Origin: Amoeboradix gromovi X-113
Lineage: Eukaryota; Fungi; Sanchytriomycota
Length of the DNA stretch: 6,200 nucleotides
Direction: 5' to 3'
NCBI GenBank assembly: GCA_018985225.1
Contig: JADGIF010000600.1
Span: 1 to 6,200 of the forward strand
In this document: positions 304 to 6,011 of the stretch, piece after piece
Numbering within the stretch: the stretch's first letter is position 1
Layout: every line of letters begins with the position of its first letter
Made by a program: the position numbers and the translations under genes
The notes under the pieces: model-generated
Databases searched by the model: none
Seen by the model: the letters and a program-made list of their open reading frames with translations, nothing else
What the model was told of the DNA's origin: nothing

Positions 304-527
304 TTCTCTCTTTAAAATAAAACAAGATGACCCACTATCTCTTTCAAATATGAGGTCTTTGGGTGTCTAGGCAAAAGTTGCAACCAATAAGATTAATTTA
401 ATTTACTATCGGTTAATACACACCTGAAATGGTGATTCAAACTATTTCAGAAAGTTAGTCTAGTGTTTATATTTGATGTCCCATTTGTTTTAAAGATGTT
501 TCCCAAATTCCCTTGAGACTAATTTTA

Positions 528-1991
528 ATGCATGTTGCTGGACAACTTCTACTAAAGGCGCAGCTGGATTTAGATGAAGCCTTGTATGCAAAAATTTTGC
601 AGAAATTAAATGATATCGAGAAACCAGAGTGGGATCTAATTAAACCTATAATTATGTCTGGTTTAAATTTTACGAATACTAGAACGGTGGCACTATATAT
701 TAGATATATGTGCAACTTCAGCTATGTATTTAATGCGGATTCATATTTGGATCATCCGGATGCTGGTATTAGAGGTGCAGCGCTGTTCTATTGTCTTCAA
801 AAGCGAATAGATATCCCAAATATATGTGTCTTGATGAAAGAAACATGCTTATATAACCAAAAATATGTTGCAGAAATGCTACTGAACTCCAACGTAGTCA
901 ATGACTCTATTTTTGCGAACATTACAGGTAGAGAAACTATTTGTCTTTATTTTATTGAAATGCTACCATTTAATCAATTTTGGAATCATCCGTATTATTT
1001 TCGTCACCTTGTTAAATGCTGTTTTCACGAAAATTCGATTATTAAAAGACTTGCATGTAATGTGGTCATTGGAATATGCAATTTTCAAAAAAAAGAAGTA
1101 TTTAAGAAGGTGAAGGACTATATATATAGTCCTATACAATTTACATATGATCTAGAATGTAAATTGTTAATCGCAACTGCCTTAATCGGCTGCGATGTTC
1201 GGCCCGAATTGAAATATAGTATAATAGAAAATTGGCCGGTTAAAATGGTGTATATGCTAGTTGGTCGTTTAAAAGAGAGGGGCAGCATGTTTATTAATGT
1301 TTACCCTATCTGTATATGTCTAGAGGTTATGCCTGTCGTTCACTATTTTAATGAAATGCAACAACAAAATATAATTTTGCAACTGCTGGAGAGTTTTGGA
1401 TTTGATAGCATCGTGCATGTCAACTTAGATCTTCTTCAGAAAAGCGCTCAGTCAAAGGCGACTCAATATGCCGTATACTTACTGTCTGGTGATTTAGAAA
1501 GTGTCTCACTCGGGCTTGCGATTTTTAGTAAGCTACCAGTTCCTTTCTCTAGATTTCATATGTTGCTACTGTACACTCAATCTGAATATCTAATGAACAT
1601 CAGAAATGCGGCTTACAAGTGCATTAGCTTGTATTTAACTGCAAATCATTCGAGTGTCGATTTGGCAATGTTTGACGATATATTCAGAAAAGGTTTGAAT
1701 GATGAGGCGGACATCAGACTAACCTGTGCTCAATCTTTGTTATTTCTCAAGGAAAATCACCAAATGTTAATGGAGTATGATTTTGTTTACTCAACTATTT
1801 ACAAGGAGGATTCTGACCAAGTAGCATATCTATTAAGTCAATGCGCTCCGAAAGTTGAAGGCAAGTTATTAGAGCTGTTGGCTTCATTCAACGATGAGAA
1901 TATCAATAACAAGTATAACATTTGCAACAAAACAGATCAGGTCGAATGGCTTCTGTCTGTTGAAAACGTGGTTCATCAAGACTGCTATTAA
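528..1991 (+). CDS. HEAT/ARM-repeat alpha-solenoid protein (about 487 aa from the first in-frame ATG; a short upstream exon is possible)
   Basis: Long uninterrupted ORF ending in TAA at 1989-1991. It contains recurring HEAT-like turn motifs: YLDHPDAGIRGAA, CFHENSIIKRLAC, SEYLMNIRNAAYKCI and GLNDEADIRLTCAQSL. The track's TTG start at 513 is unlikely in a eukaryote, and the first in-frame ATG is at 528. An alternative start is ATG 429 plus a 42-nt GTTAGT..AAG intron (454-495), which keeps frame. Coding status is well supported; the family call is motif-based inference. Confidence 0.8.
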   Translation: MHVAGQLLLKAQLDLDEALYAKILQKLNDIEKPEWDLIKPIIMSGLNFTNTRTVALYIRYMCNFSYVFNADSYLDHPDAGIRGAALFYCLQKRIDIPNICVLMKETCLYNQKYVAEMLLNSNVVNDSIFANITGRETICLYFIEMLPFNQFWNHPYYFRHLVKCCFHENSIIKRLACNVVIGICNFQKKEVFKKVKDYIYSPIQFTYDLECKLLIATALIGCDVRPELKYSIIENWPVKMVYMLVGRLKERGSMFINVYPICICLEVMPVVHYFNEMQQQNIILQLLESFGFDSIVHVNLDLLQKSAQSKATQYAVYLLSGDLESVSLGLAIFSKLPVPFSRFHMLLLYTQSEYLMNIRNAAYKCISLYLTANHSSVDLAMFDDIFRKGLNDEADIRLTCAQSLLFLKENHQMLMEYDFVYSTIYKEDSDQVAYLLSQCAPKVEGKLLELLASFNDENINNKYNICNKTDQVEWLLSVENVVHQDCY

Positions 1992-2037: not shown

Positions 2038-3016
2038 TTACTGGGGAGCATGATTAAACAAATAGCTAACACTCTCGCCATTATGAGTACGACGGATGGC
2101 CTCAGATATTGTAGCCGAAAGATCAATTAGTTCAATTTTAGGGCAACTAGACAAATTGCCAGATTGGGGGATAGTATTAGTAACAACAAGTTTAGTTATT
2201 GGTGAATTCATGATTTTTTCCAGAGCATTTCCAGACAAGATTCCGTGAGTTACCATAGCCATAACATACCTTGCGCCACCTTCTTTTAATCGAGTTGCTG
2301 CCAATGCCATTGTGCCACAGGTGTCAGCCTAAATTACTAAAAAATACCATGTCATCTACAAGGATTGCAATTTTATCATTGACATCTCCGATCAGCACCA
2401 TTCTAGCTACTTCGTTGGCCTTCTTTCTTTCCTTGTGAATAATAGCAAAGTCTACATTTAATCGATCTGCAATAGCAGTAGCTCTCTTCGCTCCTCCAGC
2501 ATCTGGGGAAACAATAACAACACTTTGCAAGTCTTCAATGTTTTGTCTAATCCAATATAAATATGAAGGTTCACCGTAAAGATTGTCTACTGGGATATTG
2601 AAAAATCCTTGAATTTGGGATGCATGAAGATCTACCGTAATGACATGATCCGCGCCAGCTACTGTCAACATATTGGCGACTAGCTTTGAGGTAATAGGTG
2701 CCCTGCTTTTGTCTTTTTTGTCCTGTCTGGCATATGGAAAACACGGAATAACCGCAGTTATTCTTCTTGCCGATGCGGTCTTGCATGCACTTATCATAAT
2801 CAGCAGCTCCATTAAATGATCATTGATTTCACCACATCCACTCTGAATAATGTATACATCTTCGTCTCTTACACTCTCACCAATACTAACAGACGTTTCT
2901 TTATTTGCAAACTTAGTAACCCCGCATTTTCCTAATGGCAGTCCTAAGCGTGTAGCTATTAATTCCGCAAATTGACGATGCGAATTTCCTGCAAATATTT
3001 TGATGTTATTTGACAT
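2038..3016 (-). CDS. PRS2: Ribose-phosphate pyrophosphokinase (PRPP synthetase, class I, fungal Prs2/Prs4-like); two exons, 3016-2348 and 2328-2038, 319 aa
   Basis: Hallmark motifs [67 protein letters not shown] and [16 protein letters not shown]. Splicing out 2329-2347 joins LVDDM to ADTCGT, restoring the PRPP-binding loop, and fuses ORFs 2324-3016 and 2038-2310 into 223+96=319 aa, the normal length for the family. The exact paralogue assignment is less certain than the function. Confidence 0.97.
2329..2347 (-). other. 19-nt GT-AG spliceosomal intron (phase 0) in the PRS gene
   Basis: The minus strand reads GAT GAC ATG|GTATTTTTTAGTAATTTAG|GCT GAC ACC TGT GGC ACA. Removal rebuilds the conserved DDMADTCGT motif with no gain or loss of residues. 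Confidence 0.95.
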
Positions 3017-3422: not shown

Positions 3423-3854
3423 ATGAAACTGCATAAAAACATTTCTAGAAACTGGTGCATGAATGAGGCAGAAGTGCACATAAAGAGGAAAGATACTAAC
3501 GGAATATATTGAAACGTTTACAGGTTGAGCCTGTACAAGGTGCGATACTCCAAAGAAAGTCAACTTGGAGACATATACATCCACAAACTGTCATTTGGAG
3601 GTAGATATATACCATATTGCAGCAAAGAGAATATATCTGAAGTACACGCATCTCCATTAAATCTCACTTCGGGCTAATTAAAGCAAGAGCGACCATTTCG
3701 ACGGAGCTATTGGCTTTGTCAGTTTCTCAGTGGAGAATTATGGTTTTCTCCAAAATCAGGACTTTTAACGAGTAGCATATACATGGCAATCAAGAGATTA
3801 ATAAGAACTGCTGCACAAACTTGTAAAAATTTAGCAAAACTACCATGCTCATAG
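3423..3854 (+). other. Possible small spliced gene or pseudogene: 144-codon frame with only two internal stops
   Basis: ATG 3423 to TAG 3852-3854, with internal TGA at 3510 and TAA at 3675. Each stop falls in a frame-preserving GT-AG segment: 3455-3523 (with TACTAAC) and 3642-3683 (with GCTAAT). No recognisable homology. Confidence 0.25.
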
Positions 3855-4042: not shown

Positions 4043-6011
4043 ATGAGACAACAAACTGTGAAAATGAAAGCTTTCAAGTTCATATTAAAAAACCACGAAA
4101 ATCTTGTCGCTGTTGAACTAAGAAACGACGAGTTGTATCTTCATGTCAACAATTATTGTAAGTTGTCAAATAAACAGGAAATTTCAGATCATTTTGAAAA
4201 CAAATGGCATTGGGAACCTTATTTCATAAACGGGCCGGTAGAAGTCAGTATCCTAGAGTTTCTTACAGACAGCGTTAGTAACACTCAATGCTGTATCACT
4301 TCCAAACTGCCTTGGATTGAAAAAAAACTGCAAAACCAAAAACATCTAGAGCAAATTGACCATAAGTTTAAACATAGCTTTGACGACTTAAAGCGTAAGT
4401 CTGATCTCTTCATGACGCCAAAAAAGAAGAAAAAGTTAAACTCTCCATTACCAGACCAGTTAAGTGGTCTCCCAAACGAGAACAAGTCTCGTGCTGTCAA
4501 TATTTTCAAGAATCAGTTGAACGCGGCTACGCCATTAAGCTCTAATCACGGCACTCCTGTTAAATATGGGGTTCCACTCTCTGTTCCTTACAAATCTCTT
4601 CAAACCCCGATATCTCCCAAGAAGAAATACGCATACAAGCAACCTTCGGCAATGCCCATTATCGCTAGTTTTAGCGACAGCTTTTCGCCTAAGAACGAGG
4701 AATTTGAGTTCAGTATCATTTCAAAAGGAAAAATCAAAGCATTAGCCTGCGTTCCAATCCCGGTTGCAAAAGCCAGTCGATCTTCATCCATGACCAGTAG
4801 AATAACATTTGCTACTAATGCCATTTCTAATAACTCTGGAAGATCTGAGACTTTATATAGCTTGTCAAATCTCCTCCAAGACTCTGACATAACGCCACGC
4901 AAAGAGAACCATTCAGCCACATTGGAGGAAATTCCATGCAATCCTGTCGAAACCAGACTGGCTTCTAGTCCGCTGAGAGATTTATCATCTGAAACCATTA
5001 AGCTATCATTGCTGGATGATCAACCGTATTCAACAACATATGAAAATAAACCAGCAGACAATATCCACAGCCCCATACCATCACCTGCCAAAAACACAGT
5101 AACTAAGACACCATTACAAATCATTTCTCAGACTTCATCTATAAGTAAAGAAATAGTAGATCACAATAAATCACAGATTTCAAAGATCAATGAGTACCAG
5201 TGCCCAATTGGTGGCTCGAAACCTGCTATTACTACGCCTAGTGCCCATCTTAGCGATGCATCAATATCTCGAGATGGGGAGAATGTAATTGAACCCGTGC
5301 TGCTGGCGCTCGTAAAAGAATCGAATGAATTGAGTGTTGCAGTCTCAAATTCAGACTCTGCTTTAGTGGGATCACAGCTACTCAAGATATCGCAGGTGTT
5401 TGGTAGCAGCGAGTACCAGAGTGACTGTGAAATGACGGTAAATTGTCCTTGTTTGAAAGAAATGGTATTTAGCGCTAAATTAGAACACTGCTACTACAAA
5501 TTGCTTCTCGTGTAAAGAGCTGGTACACATGTATTGCTGCAGATACTATAGATGTGGATCCATGTGTCATTTATGTGCTTTTAAATCATTGAAGACATTA
5601 AGAAACGTCAAGATACCGCTGACCTTGTTTGCACAATATCTTTCTCTGGCGTCGCACTTTTGTCATTTACTAATGGGAAAAGTCTTGAGCGTGGAAGGGG
5701 CAATACAATTTTTTAGCGGGATGCCGATTAGTGGTGAGGCAGCATTGCAAGTGTTATTAGATAAGCAAGTATGTGAAATGAAAGAAGATAAAGTCAAGTC
5801 GAGCAACATTACGCGCAAATTTGTGAACAACAAATGCTATCAATCTATGAGACTATTAAAAGAGAAATTAGAAACGGCATGGTTAGGTGCAAATGTAAGA
5901 TCAAAAGTAAGAAATATGTATATGGATGCAAACATACCAATTAAGTCGAAGCACGCACTAGTTAACATACCATTAAAATCCCGATATGCAAAAGTCTTGA
6001 TAAATCTATAA
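4043..6011 (+). CDS. Nuclear PHD-finger (C4HC3) protein with a long S/T/P-rich disordered middle; two exons, 4043-5464 and 5484-6011, 649 aa
   Basis: Removing 5465-5483 fuses ORFs 4043-5515 and 5529-6011 in frame (474+175 aa). The join creates CPC-LKEMNTATTN-CFSC-KELV-H-MY-C-CRYYRCGSM-CHLC, that is C-x-C-x10-C-x2-C-x4-H-x2-C-x9-C-x2-C. A basic NLS-like segment KRK..TPKKKKK lies at 4391-4435, and AATAAA follows the stop at 6020-6025. Confidence 0.88.
5465..5483 (+). other. 19-nt GT-AG spliceosomal intron (phase 0) inside the PHD finger
   Basis: The sequence reads AAA GAA ATG|GTATTTAGCGCTAAATTAG|AAC ACT GCT and contains a GCTAA branch-site-like element. It has the same length as the PRS intron and 13 of 19 identical positions. 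Removal completes the zinc finger. Confidence 0.9.

Follow-up and report, generated by a model that had tools for sequence, protein, structure and literature searches.

Gene content of the window

The window (the whole stretch of 6,200 nt analysed here) belongs to Amoeboradix gromovi (Sanchytriomycota), a fungus that parasitises algae. Its minus strand carries a gene for ribose-phosphate pyrophosphokinase (PRS) at 3016-2038, arranged as exon 1, a 19-nt insert and exon 2. Divergent from it, two ORFs of 490 and 160 aa at 4043-6011 on the plus strand were read as one gene of 649 aa joined by a predicted 19-nt intron. The features of both genes were as follows:

2348-3016, minus strand: PRS exon 1, 223 codons (223 aa) ending in ILVDDM, the DDM of the PRPP-binding motif; Pfam PF13793 at 1-117 (complete) and PF00156
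2329-2347, minus strand: predicted phase-0 GT-AG intron of 19 nt, GT at 2347-2346 and AG at 2330-2329; the environmental relatives L005/L006 and L007/L008 have introns of 20 nt at this site
2344-2347, minus strand: 5' splice site GTAT, predicted from the sequence; base 3 is A in most 19-nt matches genome-wide
2333-2336, minus strand: putative branch motif TAAT; the A at intron base 14 (window 2334), sixth from the 3' end, is the putative branch point
2329-2331, minus strand: predicted 3' splice site TAG; the bases from branch to AG include no polypyrimidine tract
2324-2326, minus strand: premature stop upon intron retention, giving a 230-aa product as deposited in EukProt
2038-2328, minus strand: PRS exon 2, 96 codons plus stop, starting with ADTCGT; PF14572 at 97-183; pN/pS 0.115-0.134 against relatives
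5465-5483, plus strand: second predicted 19-nt intron of the same class, between exons 4043-5464 and 5484-6011; the syntenic L005 orthologue has an intron of 20 nt there

The C-terminal part of the 4043-6011 product showed a cysteine/histidine pattern like that of a PHD-type zinc finger, which is split by the 5465-5483 intron. The product was 34% identical to that of the syntenic L005 gene, and no Pfam or Atlas name was obtained for it. A 492-aa ORF at 513-1991 (plus strand) had a weak Pfam match to TIP120 (CAND1-like HEAT; E 4e-6) and converges on the PRS gene, with 46 nt between their stops. In the 1-kb intergenic region, at about 3530-3780, the segments 3532-3571 and 3701-3778 had high-depth matches to numerous further contigs of the run, which points to a small dispersed repeat; Rfam gave no match within the window, this region included.

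The 19-nt insert of the PRS gene

Removal of the 19 nt produced a PRS protein of 319 aa that was 75-82% identical to chytrid and blastoclad enzymes. It combines PF13793 with PF00156/PF14572 and an intact PRPP-binding motif, as in a class I PRPP synthetase (fungal PRS2/3/4-like). Exons were searched one by one, and joined translations were used for the tree and the substitution counts only. Deletions of all lengths from 8 to 79 nt were tried around the junction, and only that of 19 nt restored DDMADTCGT; three equivalent 19-nt registers yield the identical product, and one of the three has GT-AG ends. The intron-retaining frame runs through seven codons (VFFSNLG) to the stop at 2326-2324. The initial annotation had proposed a 19-nt insert between DDM and ADTCGT in a fungal housekeeping gene, with a stop after seven codons and loss of the C-terminal 96 aa in the unspliced frame, and each of these points held.

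Overall, a genuine spliceosomal intron very probably splits this essential gene (probability about 0.93). As judged from genomic sequence, both PRS genes of the genome would obtain a complete PRPP-binding loop and their C-terminal 96 aa only through a splicing step that is itself predicted.

Relatives, paralogue and phylogeny of PRS

Two environmental relatives from four metagenome samples (L005/L006 and L007/L008) encoded PRS proteins 93% identical to that of the window. Both carried 20-nt GT-AG inserts, differing in sequence, at the same codon boundary. Synonymous sites between the window PRS and the relatives were near saturation (pS 0.76-0.87), while exon 2 was under purifying selection with the pN/pS listed above, though somewhat faster than exon 1 (pN 0.10 vs 0.03-0.04). 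The six ADTCGT codons upstream of the first Met of exon 2 showed synonymous differences only among the relatives, and in L005 a Leu replaces the Met at which a separate exon-2 protein might begin.

The only other PRS copy in the genome was a distant PRS5-like paralogue, in which a separate 19-nt intron lies 5 nt beyond the window site, and no uninterrupted PRS copy was found in the genome. The read-through product of this second gene was identical to EukProt EP00835 Amoeboradix gromovi P002764. The paralogue intron measured 19 nt here and 20 and 21 nt in two relatives, that is three frames at one site, which rules out programmed ribosomal frameshifting. The position of the introns was thus kept between species while their interior sequence was free, as expected for U2-type introns.

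In EukProt, the window PRS protein clustered with a protein of Sanchytrium tribonematis, which ends in DDMVVDAHLG, seven codons after DDM as in the window. If the Sanchytrium intron also has 19 nt, the His codon would place an A at base 14, as far as can be told from the protein. The initial annotation had called for a PRS phylogeny to place the organism; in the resulting tree the window, the two metagenome relatives and Sanchytrium formed a clade with support of 98/86. A further metagenome sequence, L004 (PRS 76% identical), was sister to this sanchytrid clade with support of 100/100; both branches were long and attraction is possible. L004 possibly represents an undescribed sanchytrid lineage. 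Its predicted 19-nt intron (positions 1674-1692 of L004) lies 13 nt further on than the window site, begins unusually with GTCC and has TGAT as branch motif at unchanged spacing. Tiny introns would be an old trait of sanchytrids, given that L004 shares the 19-nt length and the branch spacing although its intron sits elsewhere.

A genome-wide class of 19-21-nt introns

Genome-wide counts were made with motif patterns rather than gene models on the assembly of 10.55 Mb in 1,319 contigs, and neighbouring lengths served as background; a reversed-pattern control was unfair, ranging from 67 to 193 between adjacent lengths. Matches to GTAT-N-TAANNTAG numbered 47 at 18 nt, 218 at 19 nt, 142 at 20 nt and 139 at 21-23 nt together, against a background of about 39 per length (Poisson p ~1e-87 at 19 nt). 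The broader pattern GT-N-TAAYNTAG had 689 matches at 19 nt vs 172 at 18 nt, an excess of about 520. The layout was therefore enriched 4 to 5.6 times over neighbouring lengths. A pyrimidine followed TAA in 85 of the 100 19-mers listed (85%) vs 14 of the 47 18-mers (30%), so the 18-nt matches look like chance; TAAY was also found in 27 of the 35 21-mers listed.

Scaling the excess of about 520 by the 20- and 21-nt ratios suggests roughly 900 introns of 19-21 nt in the genome, about one per eight genes, with a sharp floor at 19 nt. Five candidate introns in 56 kb of unselected DNA agreed with this estimate. In addition, Pfam domains continued across candidates of 19 nt, PSP1 with matches at 2-48 and then 50-86 and RRM_2 with matches at 1-39 and then 41-96. 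The TAAY-type motif showed no excess at 22-42 nt, the range surveyed. The genome thus has the narrow peak at or below about 21 nt and the sharp lower limit of ultra-short fixed-length systems, which supports the earlier suggestion that near-minimal introns evolved independently in this fungus-like lineage.

Other observations concern the edges of this class. A candidate intron of 25 nt was seen in L007 (2974-2998, minus strand) where the L005 orthologue has 19 nt, and longer exceptions may exist. Among the first 100 matches listed, one identical 19-mer in intron format occurred six times (C55, C65, C194, C294 and twice in C392), and one identical 20-mer occurred four times among the matches listed (C442, C576, C620, C672); these may reflect a multicopy gene family or hint at intron spreading. 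A reference-free scan of 65 kb that joined ORFs without a motif filter was too noisy and gave no length peak.

Spliceosomal RNAs and a possible splicing mechanism

Genes for U2 (102 bits), U5 (82.5 bits) and U6 (65 bits) scored above the Rfam cut-offs, and a full-length but weak U1 was found below the cut-off (37.8 bits, E 2e-7). The U2 gene (L029, 1501-1695) keeps the GUAGUA box, with one extra base just upstream of it, and near U2/U6 helix I it carries UU where AA is usual. By inspection, the box can form five of six pairs with intron bases 9-15, leaving A14 bulged. The distance from branch to intron end was fixed and total length varied solely on the 5' side. On this evidence the element is, with high confidence, a U2-type (major) spliceosomal intron whose branch point is predicted from the motif.

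In the proposed mechanism, the GUA 5' end would be read by U1 and then by U6, A14 would attack G1 to give a lariat loop of 14 bases, and the AG five bases past the branch would serve directly as the acceptor, a polypyrimidine tract being absent. From branch to AG the length would be fixed at 6 nt, and the distance from the 5' end to the branch would range from 13 to about 15 nt. In the simplest view, the 19-nt floor would be the shortest loop that the spliceosome can hold, presumably for steric reasons, and deletion bias would press intron lengths down to it. A model of deletion bias acting against a threshold has been described for mikrocytids (PMC10245619) and fits the one-sided length spectrum found here. 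In Stentor the branch A is base 10 of 15 (PMC9505925), and the 6-nt tail may be a minimum common to Stentor and sanchytrids, with a loop minimum of 14 here vs 10 there.

Alternative explanations for the insert

The genome was obtained from whole-genome-amplified sporangia, a single-cell source (PMC8371127), which raises the question of an assembly or amplification artefact. The only run that contains this DNA is probably the source of the assembly itself; an assembly of that run agreed letter for letter at depth 27 and showed no form without the insert, but is not independent. However, at exactly this codon boundary independent metagenomes have 20-nt inserts of other sequence, the Sanchytrium protein likewise stops seven codons past DDM, and hundreds of elements of the same format occur in the genome, so that an artefact, which the initial annotation had set out as a possible refutation, is excluded by the independent metagenomes for all practical purposes. 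A pseudogene, or a split gene whose exon 2 is translated from its own Met, would accord with the in-frame ATG seven codons into exon 2, with the separate 90-aa ORF given by gene callers and with the faster evolution of exon 2. Against it stand the low pN/pS of exon 2 (0.12-0.13), the ADTCGT codons before the Met, which are conserved with synonymous changes only, the absence of that Met in L005 and a genome without an uninterrupted PRS. This reading is extremely improbable, and the earlier concern about a pseudogene with an intact paralogue elsewhere fell away with purifying selection and the lack of an intact second copy.

Such short introns strain the standard model of the spliceosome, and translational recoding (a frameshift or ribosome bypass) or a non-spliceosomal excision was therefore weighed. 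Orthologous inserts of 19, 20 or 21 nt would require three different shifts, GT, TAAY and TAG are invariant while the middle is free, and the U2, U5 and U6 genes are intact, all of which makes recoding very improbable. Real introns that are only partly spliced, with retention near the 3' end as a regulatory or tolerated leak, would be compatible with a spliceosomal intron in PRS. Small microsporidian introns are spliced at about 20-55% (PMC10542269) and the 16-nt introns of Mikrocytos at 63% (PMC10245619). The active site of both PRS genes is intact only after the splice, which argues for reasonable efficiency, and partial splicing is regarded as possible but somewhat unlikely.

Position along genes and origin of the introns

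For introns read in context, in about 65 kb of the genome, each motif match of 19-20 nt lies where a long ORF ends and a shorter one begins, except for one antisense overlap (matches were taken with no ORF condition). In 11 of 11 independent genes the intron lay at 0.61-0.97 of the coding length, that is in the last 40% (KS p = 2e-4), and a kinase in L119 was a twelfth case. In microsporidia and yeasts, introns favour the 5' ends of genes (PMC10245619).

Intron positions were compared with outgroups in the PRS family only, with the Catenaria exons mapped locally at three sites. The intron at CDS 68 common to Paraphysoderma, Allomyces, Catenaria and a chytrid was absent here, as was that at CDS 539 common to Paraphysoderma and Catenaria. 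The initial annotation had suggested looking for a longer intron at the same phase-0 site in other fungi; none was found at that site in the five outgroups compared (Paraphysoderma, Allomyces, Catenaria, a chytrid and the aphelid Amoeboaphelidium), and hence the comparison does not establish the window intron as a shrunken form of an ancestral one. The introns of the three sanchytrid-type PRS genes lie at 0 (window), +5 (paralogue) and +13 (L004) within the same motif, and 91-96 codons remain downstream of each.

An old fungal intron that shrank and slid by a few bases could account for the proximity of four positions within 18 nt of the motif, namely those three and -5 in Catenaria, whose PRS has a 68-nt intron 5 nt upstream of the window site. 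On the other hand, no nearby intron was found in Paraphysoderma, Allomyces, a chytrid, an aphelid or five metagenomic fungal-like loci, and the Catenaria PRS has many introns, so that a near miss is not rare. Intron slides of 5-13 nt are moreover unusual, and this origin is considered unlikely. For the three PRS positions, introns gained independently at some favoured distance from the 3' end are preferred over sliding, and sanchytrid introns are rather probably lineage-specific gains that followed loss of the ancestral set.

Confinement to the rear of genes could arise if gain by mRNA-templated recombination starts from the 3' end, or if short introns are recognised well only near the 3'-end processing site. 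The wider scenario, with chances about even, is that the ancestral introns were lost, about 900 near-minimal introns were acquired almost only in the rear of coding sequences, and the spliceosome, whose U2 has the extra base noted above, adapted to a 14-base lariat. If true, this would be the shortest intron system in Fungi, with introns placed contrary to the rule in other intron-poor genomes.

Comparison with known short-intron systems

The nucleomorph of the chlorarachniophyte Bigelowiella natans has more than 800 introns of 18-21 nt (PMC10245619) and resembles A. gromovi in a near-identical length band and number, GT-AG ends and AT-richness. The sanchytrid introns, however, belong to the main nuclear genome of a fungus (10.5 Mb), and number about one per eight genes with a 3' bias where the nucleomorph has several per gene. 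Introns measure 15-16 nt in the heterotrich ciliate Stentor coeruleus (PMC9505925) and 16-17 nt in mikrocytids (PMC10245619); these share with sanchytrids a narrow length band, a hard floor, a GUA start and a UAG end, and in Stentor the branch A is likewise sixth from last, as predicted for sanchytrids, although the sanchytrid lariat loop would be four bases longer (14 vs 10). Both belong to unrelated supergroups and the likeness is therefore convergent. Mikrocytos has no introns in metabolic enzyme genes, whereas both sanchytrid PRS genes carry one. The earlier list of lineages with tiny introns, which named nucleomorphs and Stentor, should be extended by Mikrocytos and the myxobolids (median 22 nt).

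Microsporidia are also parasitic holomycotans with short introns (22-76 nt in Encephalitozoon cuniculi; PMC3629993) and a TAAY branch motif close to AG (TAAYTT; PMC2483917). Their introns number in the tens, vary in length and often lie at the 5' ends of ribosomal protein genes (PMC10245619), whereas sanchytrid introns occur in hundreds, are shorter and of near-fixed length, and lie in the rear parts of genes. Yarrowia, Trichomonas and Giardia (PMC2483917) share a branch motif at a set short distance from AG without a polypyrimidine tract, but their introns are not near-minimal in total length. Short-intron lineages have been described as having weak signals (PMC2483917), unlike the strong and fixed branch motif of sanchytrids. 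Myxobolid myxozoans and dicyemids (median 22-27 nt; PMC13644364) offer another parasite-linked extreme shortening within opisthokonts, but these are animals with longer introns and reduced splice-site motifs.

Novelty and consequences for sanchytrid annotation

No report of fungal introns shorter than 22 nt was found, the shortest range being that of E. cuniculi. In the literature outside subscription journals, including PMC8371127 and PMC10459994, no description of sanchytrid introns or splicing was found, and the text of PMC8371127 mentions introns only within a reference title. Ultra-short introns are known as a kind; new are the lineage and the combination of hundreds of introns, a fixed format, a strong branch motif, 3' confinement and apparently new positions. 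The PRS locus contributes the series of 19, 20 and 21 nt at a single site and the occurrence of introns at three places in one motif. The introns would represent an independent origin of near-minimal size, and the first of such size found in Fungi. Sanchytrids are the sister group of blastoclad fungi, in which PRS introns measure 68-398 nt, so that the states before and after are directly comparable. The 19-nt floor and the fixed 6-nt tail would set a limit on the geometry of the spliceosome that can be measured, and the confinement of introns to the 3' part of genes is relevant to modes of intron gain and recognition.

The published A. gromovi proteins were predicted by TransDecoder on contigs, which ignores introns (PMC8371127). 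Public sanchytrid proteomes were thus built with an ORF-only tool, and on the order of a tenth of their proteins would be truncated; what has been concluded about gene loss and metabolic reduction in the phylum should be rechecked. Finally, a scan of JGI metagenomes gave no further sanchytrids, its matches being mostly bacterial PRS genes, and public metagenome assemblies hold at least three or four further sanchytrid species (L005, L007, L116-L119). These include one contig of 104 kb and one species also present in NCBI GCA_043777775.1, and are usable for comparing introns between species.
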